A stretch of 64,000 bases of DNA, taken from NCBI GenBank assembly GCA_964035545.1, contig OZ037765.1:31123504-31187503 (forward strand), in the 5' to 3' direction. The DNA comes from Bugula neritina. Taxonomy: Eukaryota > Animalia > Bryozoa. Made by a program: the position numbers and the translations under genes. The notes beneath the pieces are model-generated. The model was not told where the DNA came from. It was given only the letters and a program-made list of their open reading frames with translations, and did not search any database. Numbering within the stretch: position 1 is the first letter of the stretch; every line of letters begins with the position of its first letter. Shown piece by piece: positions 1,110 through 22,200 of the stretch.

Positions 1110-8955
<7,846 letters not shown>

Positions 8956-10586
8956 GCTCCTCCATGCGTTAGCACAGGCAGCTGTTTTTTTAGAGCTGAT
9001 CCACTTTTTTATGCTATTGTTATGAGCTAATGATTCCATTTTCATATCTAATATTTTTTTAATAACTGTCATAATTTGATAATCATATTTACCCATTTCA
9101 TGTGTATAGGATTATAAAAGCCATGTTTTACTCCGTCTTTTTCACTTTGTAAATAAAATTATATTAAAATTGGCAGGTATTGTGTTATTGTGTTGGGCTA
9201 TAGGAGTATAGTGTATCTTGCCTTCGTTAACCATCAGAATCATTCAATATTGGACTCAGTGACTTGATAAACGAGGTGTAGTTTATAAGTCCTCTTGTAA
9301 ATGACAACTGGCAGCCTATATGCTCATTGAAGACCCAAAAAATATATTCAAGGCCACTTGAGTTGTAAGTAACATCTTATATAGAAGTGCCTGTGAAGAG
9401 GTGGTATGCTAAAGGTGTGGTTAGCTAGCTCTGTAGTTACAACTTGCAGTATCTGGGGCCTTCGTGATGGATTTTGCTGGGCATAGTTAACATTCATTAA
9501 TGGGATTAGGTGCAAAATAAGGACATCTTTTGATCGAGTTTTAGAAAATGATTTTGATGTTTCATTTACTGGAAAGGGTGAAGTAAAGTTTTCCGTGAAA
9601 CCAGGAGTTACCTCCCACACACAACGGCTTGCCAAGCTGAGTGACCAATCATATGATATTCGAGAGAATACTGTGCGGCTAGCTTTAGAAATTATTTCAA
9701 TGTTTGAAATTGTTAAATGTAATTCAGGGTTTTTGACTGTTAGAGCTGCGAACTCAAAACTGAGCTTCCAAAGCAAAATTGTATTCGGCCAAATAAGTCA
9801 TTCCTGCAGCAAAGTTTTGCATTCAGCATGCTGGTCGAATCAATTCCATGAAAAACAGTTAGTTCTATTTTTTGTGCTAAGTTTACGCTATAGCCGTCCT
9901 TGTGACAACCTGCTGTGTGTGGCTTGTCCTTCATTATAGTGGGCCTTTAGTCTCTTAAACCATTTTAAATGATTTCCTATTCCTTGTTTAGTTCATTTAC
10001 TAGCAGCTAATTTCTATTTATTGCGATAATTTGATGATTGCACCCAATATACATTTACATGATTTTACATCAACTGGTAAAACTTCCATCAAGTATATAA
10101 TCATAAGAAAAATTGTATTTTTACAGTATGTTAAATATCCTTTTTAGGAGTGGATATTTATGTTCTCTTATAGAGAGTCAATCATATGAAAAATGCTCAA
10201 AAAATCATGTAATTAATGCAAAAGAAATGTACATGCAATATATGAAACCTAAAACAATAATTATAAAAACAATATATGTAAATAGTTGAGCATAAAAAAT
10301 ATATGTAGTATGATAATTTTCACAATATAAAATAAAATGGGTATATCAATATGTATAACTTTAATGTTTTCATACTGTCCATAAATATACAATAGAATGG
10401 ACATGTGAAACTTCAGCATAGAATACAGTGGGAGTTGTCTTATTAATGTACTGGAATGATTTTAGCACTAGAAAAGTTGGTAGTTGTAAAACCTGTGTGA
10501 AATCTTATTATCAGCAGTGAAATAAAAAATAATTAAAAACCTGTGCATATTCACTTTGGTAGACTTCTTATCACACTAGGCTGTTA

Positions 10587-13500
10587 TTAGCTATACATTG
10601 CATGTATGTACAACAAGCTAAAAGCACAAATAGATAAAACAAAATTTAAAGATTGTGGAGTTAGTGAGCTGCAGCCGGAATCGACCCACGGCTGCCAGGC
10701 TACAAGCTTATTGTATTGAGGATCGCCTTTCTCATCAGCTACTGACGAAGTTGTGTATTTCACACTCTCATTAAACTTGCTAATGTCTTCCATAAGATTT
10801 CGTAATACGACTTCACTAGTTGAGAGAGGAGCAATATTTCTCTTTTCACATGGATCTAGAGCGATATTAAATAAGCACGGGGCTTGCTTAGGGTTGCAGG
10901 TGAGTGTGTTAGCTAGTCCGCAGTCGACATCTGTTTCTGATATACTGTACCACTCGTTCATGTCTGCTAGGTAGCCGTCTGCATTGGTCTAAAAATAGGT
11001 ACAGTATAAGGAATTGTCAGACTACTCAAGCCAGTTTTTTTTATACATATTTATACATTTATTTCAAATACTAATGACTTATTTTACAACCAGCAAATGA
11101 GCAAATTAGGAACTGCTTAAACTTGATGAGGTTTATATTCAAGCCGTAGTATTAGCAATACCAGAAATATCGCAATGTGAAGTGTGAACAGGCCTTTACA
11201 CTTTTTACAATCATTTCACACAGAGAGGATAACTCCACAGATCACTCACCACAACTTTGTATTCAAACTTGGTATAGGAAGCACTGTCACCGTATATAAA
11301 GTGCATTATACTGTTTCTCACATTCGGGCCATCTGTTAATAAGCAATTGAACTGGTCTATCCCATACAACTTGGCTTCAGGCTTCAACACTACTGTTGGA
11401 GAGTTGCCTAAAAACAGGAAGTGGATTTTGTTGTTTAGTAAAGTACGACACATTTTGATTTTAGTAGATAAATATGCTGAGCTAGTAGTATTTTAGGGAG
11501 CAAAACATAAGCTAGTGATAAATTATTGAGGTGGGTGCAGTAATGGGGAAATTGAGAAAAGTTTGTGTTCTAGATTAGAAATGTAGCAAAAGAAGTTATG
11601 CTCTCGAATTTCAACCCAAATTTTAACCAAAATTTATTACGAAAAGGAAAAACTTAAGCTATTAAAGTTTCTCTACTACCCCACCTAAATGATAAATTTT
11701 TTGGTCCAAAGAGAAATTCTACTCTAAGAAAGAGCATATTATAGGTCCATAAAACTTACAAAGGGATCTCAACTAGAATTTTGTGTAATTTTAAAAATCA
11801 TTTAATATTTTGGCAAAAAGTTAACTCAAAGAAGGCTGATTGTAGTATTTCTTTAAAAGAAGATATTCTATGGTTCATAATTAGTAACGTTGTCACTATA
11901 ACTGTTCGTTGTCATAATTTTTTCTGTTACAACCAGGATTTTTAAATAGTTGAGGTCATGCATTTTACCATCTGTGAACTATGGGAAATGTCAACTTTAA
12001 ATTTTATCCAGGTCTACACCATGCGCCATGCATTACATGCGTGCATTACTTGTACTATCTATTTTTAGATCAATGTGGGATGAAGAGCCTAAATTTAAAA
12101 TTCATTTTTTCACATGAATATCCCAAGTGTTATCTAACTATGCATAATAAAAATTGACCTTCTGTAAAGCAAAGATTGAAATATAATCCGATTAACACGA
12201 GAAACTAGTTGGAGCAGTACATACACTGATATTATGTAAACATGGCAGAAGCAATGACAAGTATATACTTTATGTAAATACAGAACCTGTGCGGCCAGGT
12301 GAGTCAGACAACATTTTATTAAGCAAAAAGTTACGATATTTGACTAATTTGATACTTTGTAAACATACTTGTGAATGGGATATGATACAACAAACACTAA
12401 ATATTATAACTTTATTTTTGAGCTTACATGGGAAAACTAAATTTCGTGTTATTCACATGAATGAAAGTTGAAATATTCTATTGCGTAGTAAAGCATTTAA
12501 ATGCACAGCATATAGTTCCGTGGAAGTTTTCATTATTGAACCTATGAGTTATTATTATTGCTAATACTTTCACTGCTATCGTATTTACTCAAACCAACAC
12601 CACACAAATATTATTGAATGCTTGAGAAAATCAATAAATTATCAACAACCAACTTTTTTGTTTATTCATTGTTGAACAAAAAATGAAAAAATTTGTTAAA
12701 TGAGTGTTATATGATTTTAGATTGCGTTTACTTAATATAAGAAATAATTGTTGGAGCAGTAGAAAAATATTAGAAGAATTTATTCACATAGCCTCCCTTG
12801 GTATAAAACTGACTTCCTTCTATTAACTGAAGTTGCATTATCTAATAGACACTATTTGGAGCACATACAAAGGAGCAGCTATGGTCTTGGAGTTAGAGAA
12901 TTTGCATAGTAAGCACCAAGTCATGGGTTTGCGTCCGACAAAGGCCATTGGTAAAGTTAGGAAGAGCATCCCAGGCAAAATTGCTTTTGCGCCACATTTT
13001 TGAAAAAGTTCTTAGCTCACTTTAAAAAAACCCTTCCATCAGGAGTTTTTTCACAGGGAGGGTGACTATAAACTTGCATGAATTTTTTTTATTTGAAGCA
13101 CATACAAGTCCAGGCAGCCTTAAGAGACATTTGATGGGCATTCAGTAGGGCCTGTAACGTAGAGAAAGTAGAAACTTACCTGTTGCTTCCTGGTACATAC
13201 TGGCTAGAGTTGGTATCCAGTCGGCCACATGGAATATACATGTGGGTATATAGTTGGATGCTCTGGTAAACATGTCATTGAATATCAGGGCTACTCCCTT
13301 AACTCCCCCTTCCCAGCCTGTAAGCTTTGATCCTCTGCAACAAAATCCTTGAAATCATGTGGTTTTAGTGTAAAAAATGACATTTTCTTATCTGTAGGAG
13401 GGAGAAAAGTAAGCTCTCCGTGACAAAAAAGTTAACCTATAGTCTTATGATTCATTGGTTATACAACAATCGGTCAGGTAAATCGTACATTGTTAACAAT

Positions 13501-16500
13501 GACCTGCTATATTATGTTAAGGATGTTCCAATAAATACTAATTTAGAAGTTCTTTTGGAAGACACCATGACTGACTTTGCACTGGCTTTAATGCATTGAA
13601 AATCAGTGAACACGAGACATTCTGTTTCCTGAGTGTTTTCGTATTGTTTTCACAGCCCTTAGTTATATAACAGATTAACAGTCTAATTCAACGTGTATTA
13701 GTAGTTAGACTAGCTAATGTTTTATAAAGACAGGCCCTATAATCGTCATAGAGAAAAATCTTGCAACACTTGGCAATGCCAGCCTACAAAGAGCTGCAGT
13801 AATAATTTGGTAAAGGTGGTGGACTCGGCCTAGATAAGGGTAGCTTGCTGCTGATGCCAAATAAAGAAACTCGCAATGCAAGAGCTGCCTTGCCATAATT
13901 AGTTCTACAGACACTAAAGGGAGAAGTACGTCAGCAAGTTCTATGTTTAGATGACTTTATGGGGTTAGCAGCATTTTCTGATGTTTCATCCCAAACATAA
14001 TTAAGATAATCAGCGGTTTTAATGCAATTTGATTTACCAGATTGAAAGACCAGAAATTTTATCCAGCACCTTGGGCTGAACACATATCTTGTAGTTTATT
14101 ATAAGCTGTCTACAATGATTTATCATGACATTTTAGTTGCCTTGTTACTTGAATATAATTGTAACAGCATAGCAGGTACAAAGTTTAAATAATGTGAGTT
14201 TTAATATCTGTGATTTACAAGTTAAATGCTGGATTTATTAGAATAAATAATGTTATATCTATTCTAATAATTTAACCAAATTTCAATTTTTTTACTTCTT
14301 GCAGCCTTGTATACTACAAATGAGAGTTAAATCTTGCCTGAAGGAAGTACTACAAGATTTTAGATAAATGGCAGAGAACCTAGAGTACATTGAACTGATG
14401 TCATCAGCACCAAGTAGCAAACCTGTATGGTGAGTTTGAGGCAGCATTGAAGTCATATCCTCCAGCTGCCGGGCCTCCGCTGGTCGTAGTGAAGACAACT
14501 ACTGAGTTCATTATCAGCAGATGATCCTTCAGTGCCTCAATAATCCGTCCAAACTGTTGGTCTATGGCTTTGACCAGTGCTGTAACAGAGAGTTTGTGTG
14601 TTAATCTCTTGCAGAGTGCTGTAATAGTTCTTATATTGTTGTTTCTGCTAGATAAATACTAGTAGAACTGATAGCTTTTGGTTTTGCCATATTGTGTGGT
14701 GGACAAGCTTCATTTAATATACTTTTACAATATTTTTAAGAAACTAATGCTATAGAACCTGATGTAGATGCCTGGACCTATAAATATGAATCTAGTAAAA
14801 ATAGTTATACTGGTAAGGAATTTTGGTGGCTTATTAGTTTTGCCAAAAACCACACTGATAACGCAGTTCAAGGTTTTTCTAATGTCACTGCTAAACGCAT
14901 ATGAAACTGAGCAGTACCTAAATAACACTGGCGAGTCGGATCGTCCACATGGCTCACAGCCCTGTAATACTCCACAGGTATTTGCTTTCTCTTTTCACTA
15001 TCTTTACACTGATCAAGATCATCTATTTGAGCTCCTTGGAAAGCTACGTACAGGTGCAGCGGCTAAAATAGAGAATGAACCACAAATTATAACCATATAG
15101 GGGCACCTGCTAGCACTACAGGCACCTTGTGTACTGTGTCATTATAGCTTGGTAACCTCCTGACAGCTCTATCAGTTGTGGTGAGTCATCAAATAAATCA
15201 TAAAAGTACGATCTTTTACCAACAGAGCTGAGATGAAATAATATGAATTACTGACTATCATTTGAGACTATACAGCATAGTTGATAATTAACAGAAATAT
15301 AACTCCTCGTTATGTAAATAACTGCTAAAAAATTCAGGCCAGAAACTCACTTTGAATTTTAGACCTCTTTTATTTAAAAACCACACAACCAAATGCAATC
15401 ACAAGTAGAACTTTTATAGAATAAACATTTTAGTTCATGTAGACAATGTTGATAAGCCAGCATATGTGAATGAAATTTCATAAACTAAGAATTCTTACAT
15501 CTTTATCATCATGATTCTTTATAATGTCAACAGCTTTGGTACCATAGAGCTCTGTTTTGAATGTACCAACTGCAGATTCATCTACATCTAAACCATTGTG
15601 GAGATCAAAGCCCTCGTGGTCACTCTACAATAAGCAGCGGAAAATTGAACTTTGCTTTTCATTTTTTTGTTAACCTTTTGAGTAAATTAAATATTGATAT
15701 CATCACATTATATTTTTAAATAAACAAAAAAATGGATAATTTGTGAATGAGGAGAAAAGCATAAGTGTAGTCAAACCAATGAAGTCAATTCCTACCAAAT
15801 ATAAACCAAATCTAAATACCATTCAAATCAAATATAAGAACAAAACTGGACTTTAAACTCTGAACATTGTTTGGGGAACTAACCTATTAGCTTAGTAAGC
15901 AGTCAGTATACTGTGTTTGTCTGATGATGAAATATGGAGTTACAAATATCACAGTCAATAGTCTGAGTTTTACTGCAGATTAAACATCTGCACCAGTTAT
16001 AGTATAGTCTGAGTTGAGCTGAGTACTAACTTAAACTACAGTAGATTATCGATAGTCTGAATTGAGCTGGATACTAACTAACTATACAAGTTACAGTAGA
16101 CTAGTAGTACCTGATCCTTAGCCTGATGAGTCAGATAATTTCCATAAGTTAAATAGGAGCCATAGAATGTATCGTATCCTCTGCTGGTTGGCAGTAAGCT
16201 CTTAGTATAAAATCCTAGATCCCACTGAAACATTACAGAAAACCATGCACACAGCCCAAACTATCAATCTTCAGAATAGCAAAAAAGGCTACATAAAAGT
16301 TAGTAAATTATGTTAATATAGTCAAAATGATATGAAGTTACTGTGACTACCATGCTGTGAATTTTTAGCAGCTAAATTCTTGCATATTTTGTATTTTATA
16401 AAAAATAATACTCAACACTAATGCTTATTGATTACTTATTTGATGGTTTTTATTTCACATCCTTTACAAGGAAGCAATGCTATTTGAATTTTAGTAGTCT

Positions 16501-19277
16501 GGATACTTGGCTTATCGATTGTATAATAAAAGCATTTGCATCAAATTAACATAATATCCTGCCATCACCATGATGAGTGAGTAAAGTTTTATAATATTTT
16601 AAAACTAAATTACGACAGAAATATTTTATAACAATGTATGGAAAACAAATTACCTGACCAACAGCATGAGTCTTATACTTAGAGTTGATCTCTTTCAGAT
16701 ACTCAGGTATAAGAAGGTGCTCAGTACCCAGCCCGTATGGTACTGTAGCATCCATTGGCTCAAACTGAGTTCCTATTTTTAAACATAGTGTTAACAGGAT
16801 CATTATTGCCTCCATAAATATTCACAAAAACAAATGAGAATATTCGTGTAGCAAATACTAACAAATGAGAATATTCGTGTAGCAAACTACTAAGAAATGG
16901 GTTGGAAAATTATCACTTAGATATAGTTGGTATTATCATTTCTTTTTATAAAAGGGAGAAAAAAAATGCAGAATCAGAAATAATACTAGAGATTTATGAC
17001 TATCTCAGGAATACTTTTCAAAACAGTAAACAAACTTGTATTAACACGCAGGCAGAATATATAGATAACATTAAGGCAGCATATGGACAACATAGGCAGC
17101 ATACATACCAAGATGAGCCGGGTGTTTGCCCGTCAGAAGGGCTGATCTTGTACTGTGACCATTGGGTGTCACGTAATAGTTCTGAAGTGACATGGATACT
17201 TCAGAGAACTTGTCAATATATGGTGTTCGAGCGTCACCCATCCCTTTGTGTATGAAACCAAAGTCATTGTGGCCCTACAAATATTATATAATACTAATTT
17301 ACAGACTAAATTTAACAACATTGAAAATTTCATTAAAAAACATAAGTGCACTACTAGTTGGGTACAAAAGGTTAATTATTGGTAGGTGAAAAGCTTGGGT
17401 CTGAAATGAAATCAATTTAATTAAAAAGAAAAAAGGTAATAATGATTATTAGTCAGGAAAAAACAAAATTCTACATTTGTATTTTTCTGTTGAGACAAAT
17501 GCAATGTAAAAGTGGCTGTTGAAGCCTACATTTTATTATGCAGAGAAAAAACTAAGAATTTCAAAAGAACAAAAGATTGATGTATCACTAAACAATAGCA
17601 TTATCTAATACTTGGACATATTATGAAGGTTTTTTGATGATAGTTGCTTCAGGTCATATAACTAAGTAGTAACACAGAAGTGGTTTTATATTTCAACAAG
17701 TTGAAACATGAGAATGTTGCATTGAGCTTTATTATAAGGGCATGACATTTTATTACCCCTCAATTCATTGCATGAGGAAACCAAATACACATTTGCAATA
17801 AGGCATGTGCCATATTTTTCTCAAGAAATCTAAGAAATGAGAAATTAAGTTACTAACAATTCAAGTCAATAGGCACCTATTCAAACACTTTGATTTAATC
17901 TACAAGATCTAACTGAGGCAATAAAATTTTGCATTCTAGTTAGAGCTGGACAGTTTCTTATAGAGGCAGCAGGCAAAGTAAATGCTGCCTTATTCTAGCT
18001 AATTTAGAAATGCAGACTTCATGAAATCATGTTTATTGCAAGGAAATGATAAACATATTATAATATTGTTTATAGTTCTATACGTTGAGTAGCTGATGAA
18101 GTTCATGCATGGATCTGTAAGCTGTACAACCTTACATTGCTGTAAGACTGACTGCCTGCCCATGATAAAGTGCACACCAACATATCTTTAATATTATCAG
18201 AGATCTTGAAAACTAAATCTTCTAGTTGTTTTGGATTTAGACAATAAATCGCAGAGAGAAGCTGCATATACTATTTGATATTGCTATGAAACACTGGTTT
18301 TTCAACATACTTTGATTGCTTTAATTGAAACTTCTAACAAATATCTATTATACTATAATTAAGAGCCAAAATGCTAATAAAACGTTATGACTCTGGTTTC
18401 TAACATAAACCATTGGCTTAATGAAGTTACACTCAGATCTGACTACTTTACTTAATTCTCATAATTACTGAAGCAGTGACTTGACTTTGTTAATCACCAT
18501 TTCAAAAGCCAGCAGATGGATCTAATTAGCAAAAGTGTTTAGACTTACACTTCAGTACTTCTGTTCAATCAGAAACTCAATATAAATTATCTATATTATA
18601 AATGTGTCCATTTTTATAAGGACTTTAGCCTAAAGCATTGCAGTCTAGTGAAGAATATAAATTATCCAAATCTTAACACAAGCAAGATAATGGCCCTACA
18701 GGCGCTGATGCTGCTTTTAGCTGTAAAGTGTCATGATAACTTTTAGTTGGGAACTATTAGTTTATGGTATAGCCTATATACGATGATTTTAGTTCCCAAC
18801 AAGATAATTCAATCTGTCAAATAAGCAGCTTAAGCACTATAGTCCAAGTATAATATAAAAGTTGTGTAGAGTGTGGCACACAGAGAGATGTGAAATAATA
18901 TACTGTAAAATTTTCTACGTGAATAAAGGGTTTAGCTTTTTGGAGGTTTGGCTATTTTGGAAGATGCCTAACATTTTAAAACTCACTTTAGATTTTCAAA
19001 ACCTTTCAAGTCTTTAACCCAGACTCCAAACAAAGAAACAAACATAATATAAGAAGTAAAGCAAAGCAGTAATTGCACTAATATTTGTAGAGAAATACAA
19101 GATTTGCTTACAGTAATAAATGTGCAATAGGCCACACTACTAAAGCTGCTAGCAATATTATTACACATTAATAGTAGTACTTACTATATCATCGACAGTT
19201 ATTATAATGATATGAGGAGTGTACGAAGAGGCAGCTATAAATCCAGAGCATAGAGTCAGCAGTTGAGCTAGCACCAT
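10587..19277 (-). CDS. Arylsulfatase B/I/J-like protein, predicted catalytically inactive, with signal peptide and C-terminal hydrophobic (GPI-like) tail; 544 aa, 10 exons
   Basis: Phase-consistent exons 19277-19185, 17274-17109, 16772-16654, 16224-16111, 15624-15499, 15062-14918, 14579-14423, 13334-13180, 11407-11250, 10988-10587 (1635 nt). Sulfatase-fold landmarks: PHIIIITVDDIGHND, TPYID, NYYVTP..RSALLTG, RGYDTFYG, PLHLYVAFQ, NSPYRGSK..WEGG, FHVADWIPTL, CLFNIALDPCEKRN, AWQPW. Confidence 0.93.
12872..13070 (+). mobile_element. Degenerate tRNA-derived SINE with a V-domain-like core
   Basis: A-box-like TGGTCTTGGAGTTAG, B-box-like GGGTTTGCGTCC, then GTTAGGAAGAGCATCC..GCAAAA, which resembles the GGAAGGGCATCC..TAAAA core of V-SINEs. 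Lies antisense in a sulfatase intron. Confidence 0.5.
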
Positions 19278-22200
19278 CTCTGTTTTCTACCAGAAATACA
19301 ATTTGCTATGTACATCAGTATTAAGTCATCGCATATACAGTTTTAATAGTTGTTACTCAAAGTACTTCTAACCAGCAACTTACCACTTAGCCATTTGACT
19401 TAAAAGAAAGAGAAATTATGTGGCGCAAAGTAACAAATCTCTTGCCAAGCACTGATTAATCGTGATTAATAAATCAAATTGATAACTACACTCGGCACTT
19501 ACACTGAATGCTCCGGTCGAACAGGTTTATATAACTCGTTTATAATGATCTCATATTTCATATAATCCCAATATCCTTGCCTGAGCAATGAAATGCAGAC
19601 AAAGTTGCTTCACTAGCAGATCTAACCTAATCTTTTGTGTACCTACTCTGAGAATCAAATCTGCTCAAATGCAAGTTCTTCCGGAGTACTTGCCATTTAA
19701 CTACTGACTATCCTGGTAGGCAATCACGCGTATCAACTTGCATTAAATTTATTATGTTTGATTTCCACTCTGAGTGGATTTATCACTTTAACAGCTACCA
19801 TGTCAATCAAGCATGAACATTTTATGAGGTCGCGGTGAGGGGATGTTCAACGCGTTATGATACAATACAGAACTGTTACAAGTGCTGACAAACGTGCGCA
19901 ATGACTCATTAGAAAGAGACGCTTTTAAAAATAAACCTGCACGGAGAAAAATCGTTGGTGTTGCTACAAAGTGCAATAAAAAAAGGCCTTTGAAATTAAG
20001 TATACGGAGCAGGTCATGAAAATGAATTTCACAAAATAAGTTAAACTTTCCAGCACCATCATGTACTTCAAATATGTAAAACATTACTTTATATAGAACG
20101 ATTTTCAATCACTTTTGTATAGATAACACATAGAATATTTGTAGACAGTGCATACACAAAGTATAGACAATGCATACACAAAGTATAGACAGTGAGTGTA
20201 TAGAGTATAGACTACAGACAGTAGCACCAATCAGTGTTTATGGTACACAATGGATGCAATGTGCTGTTGTTTCATAACCTATGTATAACTTTAATTACCA
20301 ATAAATAGGCAAAGTCTACTGACATATCCGAAGTTGTATAAATAAACAATATTTAATAATTGTTTTATGACTTCAAAAAATATGACAAACTTGCAAATAC
20401 ATAAGTTGCAAACAACCAAAACAAACATTATTATACTACTTTCAAATTTCGTACTACAATACTTGTAAATTCAGACATGAACTTGTATAAACGTTTATAC
20501 ATGCATATATTCCAAGTTTCTAGTTTTACCCATCACTGATTTTTGACTCATGTTGAACTTTACAGCAATAAACACCATTAGTAAATACAAGAATTATGTG
20601 AGAATATTTTCAATAGTTATACATACCACAGACCCAGACATGACTGATTTCATGGCTTAGTATCTTCATTAAATTAAACCTACAAAATAAACAATAATAA
20701 CTCACCTTAACACTACACAGGAATAGTTGTTGCACACAGGCTAAGTATTAAGTAGCTCAGTCTAACTCCAACTGTCTGACTGACAGACAGTGCAATCAGT
20801 TAAGTAACAGAAGTATAACAGCAAACATTCGGCTGTTAATGTGGATTATAAGGCACTATTGACTCAGGAAGCTGACTTAGAATACCAATCAACACAGCTT
20901 TTATCAAATGATTGATCCTGCCATGTAATTAACTCGCATCTATTAATACAAAGCATTATAATCTACACTTTTGATTAATCCACATTATATTATATATAAT
21001 AACCTACTTTAAATTATCAACCTCTTTCATATTATTCTTTTCAATGAGCTTATTGACTAAATTACACTTTTATTTTACTATATAATAAACTTTAGTGCAT
21101 TGGTAGTGTTGCTTTTCCATACAGCACGGTTTGTACATGCACCAAATACAATAGAGATAAATTAGTTTAAATAAAATAAATTATAATTTATTATTACTTG
21201 CGTCAGAGACACACTAATTGACTTATAAATCTTGTAAGTTTGATGATGCTGTAGGCAAATAAAAGCACACGCAGAGAAAGAAAAAAACTTAAAAGACCAA
21301 ACACAGTGGATGTGTTTTAATATAAGAGTTGTCCTTCCGTTTCTTTTTAGATTGAAGCAGACAAAGATGTACTATGTTGATTAAATTTGAGAGCAGATCA
21401 TAAACAAGTCTGTTTTATGTATTTCTTTTAACTAGTGCTAGAAAAGTGAACTATTCAACTTCCAATGTTTGTGGCTTAAATAACAGATTAGATTTTAATG
21501 GCGTTATCTGAACTAAAATTTGATATAGCTCTGTGTACCGATCTATAAGTATAAATTTATACAATTTTTTAGCAAGAATTAACAAAAGTAGGAGTGTGAT
21601 AAACTTTGAAATATTCTACTATAACTGATGGGAGAATCTTAATAAAGAGTCATATAAAATACGAGGTTAGCACTTGATATTCTTTTGTAACAAATTCTAA
21701 TTTCGAAATATAAAATTTTAACTCATTAGCTTGTTATGAGAAATAATGAGGAATTGAAACTTCAATTTGAGTATTTAAAAATGCAATATGGCCCAGTATA
21801 ATAGTCTAGTCAGTTAAAGTCAAAAAGTCAAGTTGGTATATTTTATGATTATAATTTCTATACAAACCCTTTTATATGCTAACAACATTTCTGGGCACAT
21901 TTTATAAAGATAAAATAATGTCTACTATAGGGAAGTTTTTACTCAAGTCTTACAGAATGCTTTCTGTATTCTCATCATCCAAAAAACTAACTTATTTATT
22001 TTCAGGAAAGATTAAATATTTTATATGAAGTTGTCTGCTCATATTGAAAAAAAGACTACAAAGGGCAAAACTGGTACAAGAAGATGTAGGTGCAGTAAAG
22101 GAGACATTGGAAAAAGCCTGTGTTCTAAATGAATTATGCAGCAAAAGGATTTTTATGTTCTCAAGAGATGTTCAATTTTTATGTTCTCAAGAGATGTTCA

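Follow-up and report, generated by a model that had tools for sequence, protein, structure and literature searches.

The window analyzed here is a 64,000-nt stretch of the Bugula neritina genome (assembly GCA_964035545.1, contig OZ037765.1, positions 31,123,504 to 31,187,503), and coordinates below are positions within this window unless another locus is named. On its minus strand lies a gene of the sulfatase family, which an initial annotation made from the letters of the sequence had read as an intact but catalytically dismantled sulfatase with a full 544-amino-acid (aa) open reading frame (ORF) in 10 phase-consistent exons. Rebuilding the gene from the raw sequence confirmed this structure: it spans 19277-10587 (-), every intron is bounded by GT..AG with consistent phases, and the coding sequence (CDS) of 1635 nt comprises 544 codons and a stop codon, with no internal stops. 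Two Pfam domains were recognized, Sulfatase (PF00884) in exon 2 and Sulfatase_C (PF14707) in exon 10, both below the gathering score because the exons were scanned singly. A scan of window positions 8000-20500 with Rfam gave no match, and an exact database look-up of the ORFs of exons 2 and 4 returned no record.

Exon 1 (19277-19185) supplies the start codon, a signal peptide of about residues 1-17 (19277-19227), and D29 and D30 (19193-19188), the metal-ligand pair equivalent to D53 and D54 of human arylsulfatase B (ARSB); its N-terminus matches the SYTPHIIIIT.DDI of the orthologues and exon 1 of a locus from another species (L027). The former formylglycine motif, G70-H-S72-T-R74, is encoded by exon 2 (17274-17109), with the R74 codon at 17148-17146 and the G70 codon at 17160-17158, the same position that the initial annotation had given for it. 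Exon 3 (16772-16654) ends in Q126 (16656-16654), which stands in place of ARSB K145, and exon 4 (16224-16111) opens with W127-D128-L-G, where D128 (16221-16219) stands in place of ARSB H147. Exon 5 (15624-15499), drawn from the gene model and tblastn, is followed by exon 6 (15062-14918) with the sequence AFQGAQ, in which Q218 (15029-15027) takes the place of ARSB H242, and by exon 7 (14579-14423) with FTTT287S288GG, in which T287 and S288 (14484-14479) take the place of ARSB D300 and N301. The segment R-G-S-K310, whose Lys (13327-13325) is the retained equivalent of ARSB K318, and a WEGG motif lie in exon 8 (13334-13180). Residue assignments in exons 2, 3, 4, 6, 7 and 8 come from the alignments described below, and exons 2 through 9 are joined to one another in RNA contigs. 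Exon 9 (11407-11250) rests in addition on the gene model and on comparison with contigs of a sibling lineage, and exon 10 (10988-10587, stop codon at 10589-10587), which encodes the Sulfatase_C region, on Pfam, HMMER and the same comparison. The last residues, 513-544 (10685-10590), form a C-terminal tail that by hydropathy consists of a small-residue run (DSGCSS), a spacer and a hydrophobic end, resembling the attachment signal for a glycosylphosphatidylinositol (GPI) anchor.

Catalytic residues were mapped by tool alignments to ARSB (PDB 1FSU; chain index + 41 = precursor numbering), which is the closest solved relative of exon 2, and by MAFFT alignment against eight canonical animal sulfatases; the roles of these residues are said to go back to the 1997 work of Bond et al. 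on ARSB. Hydrolysis by sulfatases needs formylglycine made from the Cys of CxPxR, a metal held by D53/D54/D300/N301, and K145/H147/H242/K318 for sulfate binding and proton transfer (PMC5066984). Human ARSB (N-acetylgalactosamine-4-sulfatase; SulfAtlas S1_2) and invertebrate arylsulfatase B/I/J-like proteins have the same fold and domain order as the bryozoan protein, which keeps the ARSB catalytic positions D53 (D29), D54 (D30), R95 (R74) and K318 (K310), together with WEGG and a C-terminal CLF..DP.E motif. In contrast, seven positions are replaced, i.e., C91 by G70, P93 by S72, K145 by Q126, H147 by D128, H242 by Q218, D300 by T287 and N301 by S288, and a hydrophobic C-terminal tail is added. 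The replacements are spread over exons 2, 3, 4, 6 and 7, and the motifs read PNGHSTR versus CTPSR, GQ|WDLG (the bar marking an exon junction) versus GKWHLG, AFQGAQ versus ..VH, and FTTTSGG versus F..DNGG, with the Lys of RGSK retained. The initial annotation, which had counted seven active-site changes across five exons, read the motifs as GHSTR, GQWDLG, AFQGAQ and FTTTSGG, and left only the DD pair, the Arg and the RGxK Lys in place, was accurate in every detail.

Homology to the sulfatase family in sequence and fold, across both the N- and C-terminal domains, is evident by Pfam, the 1FSU alignments and Foldseek, while three features that define the catalytic machinery are missing. The C/S-x-P-x-R signature reads G-H-S-T-R, with Arg the sole motif residue kept, and is identical in three further species; two of the four side-chain ligands of the divalent metal are lost (D300 to T and N301 to S); and the sulfate-binding and acid/base set of K145, H147, H242 and K318 reads Q, D, Q and K, with three of the four replaced. 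The nucleophile position has no side chain, the Cys and Pro recognized by the formylglycine-generating enzyme (FGE) are gone, and replacements have removed half of the metal ligands as well as three of the four Lys/His residues; on these grounds, sulfatase activity by the family mechanism appears very unlikely. By descent the protein belongs to the ARSB/I/J-like branch of the S1 sulfatases, but by function it fails these three defining features and therefore should not be filed as a sulfatase.

The remodeled pocket has lost three cationic side chains and gained one Asp, and the metal is probably lost too. Canonical sulfate binding by such a pocket is doubtful, since three of five cationic residues and half of the metal ligands are gone. 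The initial annotation had suggested a protein that binds sulfate or sulfated glycans; this is possible, although the residues present do not favor it and speak mildly against an ancestral sulfate pocket. A site rebuilt from D29, D30, D128 and the Thr/Ser hydroxyls, perhaps with a cation, is conceivable from the residues at hand.

Splicing and expression were examined by comparing the window with reads over 11275-17274, a range that runs from exon 2 through most of exon 9 and takes in all exons with replaced residues, using two RNA-Seq runs (X1 and X2) of one sample labeled "symbiont metagenome" and one DNA run (X3). RNA contigs contained the joints 16772|17109, 16224|16654, 15624|16111, 15062|15499, 14579|14918, 13334|14423 and 11407|13180, matching exactly the modeled intron borders at all seven junctions tested, from exons 2/3 to exons 8/9; all joints read CT..AC on the plus strand, i.e., GT..AG for the gene, and none of the seven was present in the DNA run X3. 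Word depth of the exon contigs was about 130-240 in X1 and about 20-36 in the smaller X2, and contigs containing introns had a depth of 3-30 across both runs. The RNA contigs are ~95% identical to the window and therefore come from a sibling lineage, not from the sequenced individual. In addition, a full-length 1819-nt transcript of an orthologue was found in another species (L010; protein P0156). Altogether, the gene is spliced as modeled and expressed, as seen in spliced RNA-Seq contigs of the sibling lineage.

The initial annotation had named transcripts with alternative exons that bring back CxPxR and KWH as evidence against its own reading. Such exons, for CxPxR or KWH, were sought and rejected: when seven sulfatases were compared by tblastn with all 64 kb of the window, a single set of sulfatase exons emerged, and the RNA contigs over the range compared held no competing joints within the gene, all other joints falling in high-copy repeats.

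Homologues were searched exon by exon or with database orthologues, and the joined 544-aa model was used only in local alignment and in the tree. An exhaustive HMMER search with exon 10 returned a 126-aa fragment (P0001) from the RNA runs named above at 92% identity, about ten others, 121-142 aa long and 32-45% identical, from Logan, ENA and JGI assemblies, and one full-length protein (P0008), which is NCBI XP_067951666, annotated "arylsulfatase J-like isoform X2", from Watersipora subatra. This nearest annotated relative belongs to a cheilostome bryozoan of another superfamily. A word search with the Watersipora protein retrieved P0156, the 540-aa product of the 1819-nt transcript mentioned above, from another run; beyond it came canonical sulfatases at 37% identity or less. 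The window model, the Watersipora protein and P0156 are about 50% identical to one another and 32-34% identical to canonical members. The residues G, S, Q, D, Q, T and S at the replaced positions, and D, D, R and K at the kept ones, are identical in all three. Given that 40% of columns are invariant among the three sequences and assuming independent sites, the chance that all seven replaced sites would be invariant is about 0.0016.

Partial genomic loci extend this pattern. In L011 (JGI) and L014 (ENA), which read ..FQAAQ../..LQSAQ.., ..FTTTSGG../..FTSTSGG.. and RGAK, the Q, TS and K are kept. A degenerate DNA pattern for PNGxSTRSALLT recovered five further loci from metagenome contigs (L026-L030, ENA) that keep PNGHSTRSALLTGKHP together with HAVGQ|WDLGFY and PNGHSTR and have introns at the same positions; a sixth match (L031) was unlike the queries. 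Peptide patterns taken from exon 1 and from the junction of exons 1 and 2 yielded nothing confirmed in metagenome contigs, and a word-index search with the middle third of P0156 for spliced sibling fragments returned only an unrelated bacterial fragment. Gly occupies the nucleophile position in all four species for which exon 2 is known, and orthologues of at least five species have intact ORFs. Near-invariant canonical residues are replaced in clade-invariant fashion at 14 positions, 8 of which lie in active-site motifs (the seven replacements plus S94T); conservation within the clade is highest in the motifs around the replaced sites, and the RSALLTGKHP segment downstream of the old motif is kept. 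The orthologue comparison called for by the initial annotation thus shows old replacements, identical in Watersipora subatra and P0156 and recurring in the partial loci. As judged from these alignments, the dead active site is ancestral to the clade and conserved, and the rebuilt pocket looks constrained for a new, non-catalytic job because the replacing residues are invariant among orthologues that are ~50% identical.

Elsewhere in the genome, homologues of exon 2 were found at six other loci, all of which keep C-x-P-x-R. The exons of these six canonical paralogues, as recovered by tblastn, carry GKWH, ..VH, DNGG (DNGA in one) and RGxK, and none has an extended C-terminus. The dead type is single-copy in the genome. 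A tandem or second dead copy was sought and rejected: searching the genome with exon 10 returned the gene itself and two weak (30%) matches elsewhere, and searching with exon 2 gave the six loci, each of which has the Cys. The three dead sequences group together as a clade with 100/100 support in a maximum-likelihood tree; no other internal branch among the animal sequences is as long as the stem of this clade (1.28 substitutions per site), and the tips of the clade (0.41-0.48) are ordinary. The clade is joined weakly (81/89) to the paralogue parB; this sister relation is tentative, since the paralogue rows of the tree are projections of high-scoring segment pairs with some intron noise. On this tree, the pattern is one of duplication, a burst of change and then constraint. 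Two of the canonical loci have features of their own. The gene parB itself (L018+L019, G000:C2:1425501-1445500, minus strand) is canonical, with two adjoining versions each of exon 3 and exon 6, and another locus (L016+L017, G000:C1:1520001-1540000) holds a tandem pair of complete canonical ARSB-like genes, separated by about 6 kb, with their catalytic motifs intact.

Selection on the coding sequence was estimated from two genomic-type contigs of the sibling lineage (L008 and L009) that align to window positions 11558-8520. Exons 9 and 10 are 94% identical between window and sibling; introns 8 and 9 are 90% identical and contain many indels. Over 185 codons, the Nei-Gojobori method gave 16.5 synonymous and 14.5 non-synonymous differences, with a dS of 0.16, a dN of 0.034 and an omega (dN/dS) of 0.21 (Fisher p = 4e-5). 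The coding sequence is under purifying selection in this comparison of exons 9-10. All exonic indels relative to the sibling are in frame: a 9-nt deletion at about 13255, in a variable loop of exon 8 after GVALIFNDMF, and a 6-nt insertion within the hydrophobic tail encoded by exon 10, two regions whose length also varies among orthologues. The substitutions shown for the sibling in exon 8 are one synonymous change and one Tyr-to-Ser change. The orthologue transcript L010 has no nucleotide-level match to the window gene, and dS is therefore saturated for that pair. The initial annotation had proposed selection for a retained fold and had named a dN/dS near 1 with no expression as the sign of a recent pseudogene; the omega of 0.21, the intact ORFs and the spliced transcripts bear out the former and are the opposite of the latter.

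The fold was approached through the Watersipora orthologue. Its AlphaFold2 model, built from a 21-row alignment, has a mean pLDDT of 85 and a pTM of 0.87. The best match of the orthologue sequence in the PDB is 1FSU (E 7e-56), and Foldseek of the model likewise returned human ARSB 1FSU as the best match (E 7e-46; TM 0.75 by query, 0.85 by target), with carrageenan sulfatases, ARSA and GALNS ranking next. According to this model, the sulfatase fold is intact. The N-terminus is a typical signal peptide common to the orthologues. At the other end, all 12 clade members have 26-40 aa beyond the WxxW motif, whereas canonical sulfatases have 0-16 residues after WxxW, none hydrophobic, and the tail is found in none of seven. 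The clade tails reach a maximal 15-aa Kyte-Doolittle hydropathy of 1.5-2.7 and are laid out as a small-residue run (e.g., DSGCSS, DSVNSAA, SAANKAS), then a brief spacer and a hydrophobic segment of 15-20 residues. In 11 of the 12 members this segment runs to the C-terminus or leaves no more than three residues after it, and in P0006 about nine residues follow it. The AlphaFold2 model shows the tail as a terminal helix of low confidence. A charged cytoplasmic tail would be expected of a type I transmembrane anchor; the layout seen here points to a GPI-attachment signal rather than such an anchor, as judged by simple hydropathy and residue inspection for the combination of signal peptide and C-terminal signal. 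The cell-surface location that the initial annotation had put forward gains support from the signal peptide and from the clade-specific tail of putative GPI-signal type.

Several other elements were observed in and around the gene. Two high-copy interspersed repeats lie in intron 8, at 11528-11606 and 12935-13090. The bins containing them reach a word depth of 127,000-166,000 in the DNA run, up from about 147. The piece at 12930-13095 has at least 1,739 candidate copies of about 83% identity on all chromosomes and is abundant in the RNA runs too; it looks SINE- or MITE-like (short interspersed or miniature inverted-repeat transposable element) and has no Rfam match. A 34-bp tandem array (11.3 copies, 94% match) occupies 8170-8548, about 2 kb downstream of the stop codon of the gene, and the sibling contig L008 ends in the same 34-bp repeat. 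The downstream neighbors of the orthologues vary by species, with an alpha-L-fucosidase in L011 (8759-13861 of that locus) and L012 and an MCM6 fragment in L013 (2205-2924 of that locus) and L015.

Altogether, the essential catalytic residues are gone, and the gene is expressed and maintained by selection, the two marks of a conserved pseudoenzyme. We consider it probable that the gene encodes a conserved, expressed pseudoenzyme on an ARSB-like fold, most likely GPI-anchored, with a non-catalytic binding role at the surface. The pseudoenzyme-under-selection part of this reading is well supported, and surface anchoring is plausible from the tail. In the mechanism we propose, change would have come in a burst after a single duplication, mostly in the active site, before the gene settled under lasting constraint and acquired a membrane anchor. 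The resulting SulfAtlas S1_2-type protein would keep the whole fold, enter the secretory pathway via its N-terminal signal peptide and sit on the outer side of the plasma membrane, held by a GPI anchor at the C-terminal tail; there the rebuilt pocket may bind a ligand or partner in an adhesion, receptor, co-receptor or lectin-like role. A surface-displayed binding module is suggested by three things together: the fixed replacements, the motifs around them, which show the highest conservation, and the anchor tail. From the residues and the tail we infer the lack of activity, the GPI anchoring and the surface binding role. Some observations weigh against this reading. The expression data come from a sibling lineage whose exons diverge by about 5% and from another species rather than from the sequenced individual; the runs are labeled "symbiont metagenome", their RNA status being a guess, yet the spliced contigs prove cDNA. 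The structure model is that of the Watersipora orthologue, not of the Bugula protein, and dN/dS was taken from exons 9-10, a third of the CDS. GPI anchoring is predicted by a hand-made sequence criterion, to which a C-terminal transmembrane helix would be the alternative. Finally, D53, D54, R95 and K318 remain and H147 has become Asp, so that another metal site or chemistry is conceivable.

That last point leads to a neofunctionalized enzyme, in which the scaffold would have been rebuilt for another reaction (e.g., that of a hydrolase or transferase) by means of the Asp pair, Asp128 and Ser/Thr hydroxyls. LtaS and EptA, members of the alkaline-phosphatase superfamily, use a Thr nucleophile. 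The invariance of the replacing residues, and the fact that 8 of the 14 clade-specific replacements fall in old active-site motifs, would fit a remodeled rather than an abandoned pocket, as would the four retained residues and the acidic residue gained at 147; nevertheless, the nucleophile position is Gly in each of the four species mentioned above, two metal ligands and both histidines are lost, and we know of no family in the alkaline-phosphatase superfamily with the residue set of the dead clade. We regard such an enzyme as quite improbable. Pseudoenzymes often regulate active paralogues, and the protein could instead serve inside the secretory pathway, without catalysis of its own, as partner or regulator of active sulfatases or their maturation pathway, as SUMF2/pFGE does for SUMF1. 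With such precedent, a kept RSALLTGKHP and six active-type paralogues in the genome, a role of this kind has some basis, but it is unlikely: the Cys and Pro recognized by FGE are gone and the protein is therefore not an FGE substrate mimic, while the clade-specific anchor tail points to the membrane or surface and a C-terminal retention signal is absent.

A recently inactivated gene, a future pseudogene whose frame has stayed open by chance, might be expected from the loss of seven catalytic residues and the long stem branch. Against this stand the same replacements in ~50%-identical orthologues of another cheilostome superfamily, ORFs that are intact in all species seen, the omega of 0.21 and spliced transcripts at high contig depth. 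The chance of a decaying gene is accordingly very slight, and this explanation is effectively excluded, except if the orthologue sequences were assembly artifacts. A bolder version of the preferred surface-protein reading is that cheilostomes, possibly bryozoans at large, have a lineage-specific GPI-anchored receptor or lectin derived from a dead arylsulfatase, whose strictly conserved pocket recognizes a specific extracellular ligand; we put this forward tentatively, as more likely wrong than right. If true, the candidate ligands would be a microbial surface cue or a glycan, sulfated or acidic, from the cuticle, the larval adhesive or the skeleton matrix, and no earlier animal adhesion or recognition molecule would be known to derive from a sulfatase.

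Dead enzymes serving as surface or binding proteins are familiar from other folds, e.g., the cholinesterase-like adhesion molecules neuroligin and gliotactin, chitinase-like lectins such as YKL-40, and the carbonic-anhydrase-like domains of RPTP zeta/gamma. Like the bryozoan protein as we read it, these retain the fold with replaced catalytic residues, are under purifying selection, are extracellular or membrane-located, and reuse a pocket or surface for binding; their folds are unrelated to the sulfatase fold, and the likeness is by analogy. The GPI-anchored alkaline phosphatases TNAP and PLAP belong to the same alkaline-phosphatase-like superfamily and display a related core fold on the cell surface by a GPI anchor, as predicted for the bryozoan protein, but they are active metalloenzymes, and the bryozoan tail arose independently in the ARSB-like lineage. 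SUMF2/pFGE, an inactive, endoplasmic reticulum (ER)-resident paralogue in the sulfatase-maturation pathway, is likewise a conserved pseudoenzyme tied to sulfatase biology; it differs in its FGE fold, its residence in the ER and its action on the maturation enzyme. Another case within sulfatase biology is the sea-urchin embryonic arylsulfatase (HpArs/SpArs), which, reportedly from the work of Mitsunaga-Nakatsubo and colleagues, is largely a non-enzymatic component of the extracellular matrix and cell surface. It, too, is an animal sulfatase-family protein proposed to be structural outside the cell rather than lysosomal, but it keeps its catalytic residues and measurable activity, whereas the bryozoan clade has lost the residues and carries an anchor tail. 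Papers on the cloning of sea-urchin arylsulfatase are cited in PMC5066984, where the SulfAtlas authors remark only on a few bacterial sequences that have lost the Arg (PMC5066984).

A full-text literature search, with most subscription journals outside its reach, found no description of a pseudosulfatase, an inactive sulfatase pseudoenzyme or such a protein from a bryozoan or from Bugula. Sulfatases are thus a large enzyme family for which the literature searched holds no described animal pseudoenzyme, and the clade reported here, so far seen only in bryozoan-type sequences, is a pseudoenzyme clade within that family. The name of its sole annotated member, "arylsulfatase J-like", wrongly implies activity, and the clade warns that counts of sulfatase genes in invertebrate genomes are not counts of sulfatase activities. 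It offers a clean natural experiment on the re-use of an enzyme fold, and its ligand, if found, could bear on bryozoan adhesion, on the formation of cuticle and skeleton, or on host-microbe recognition.

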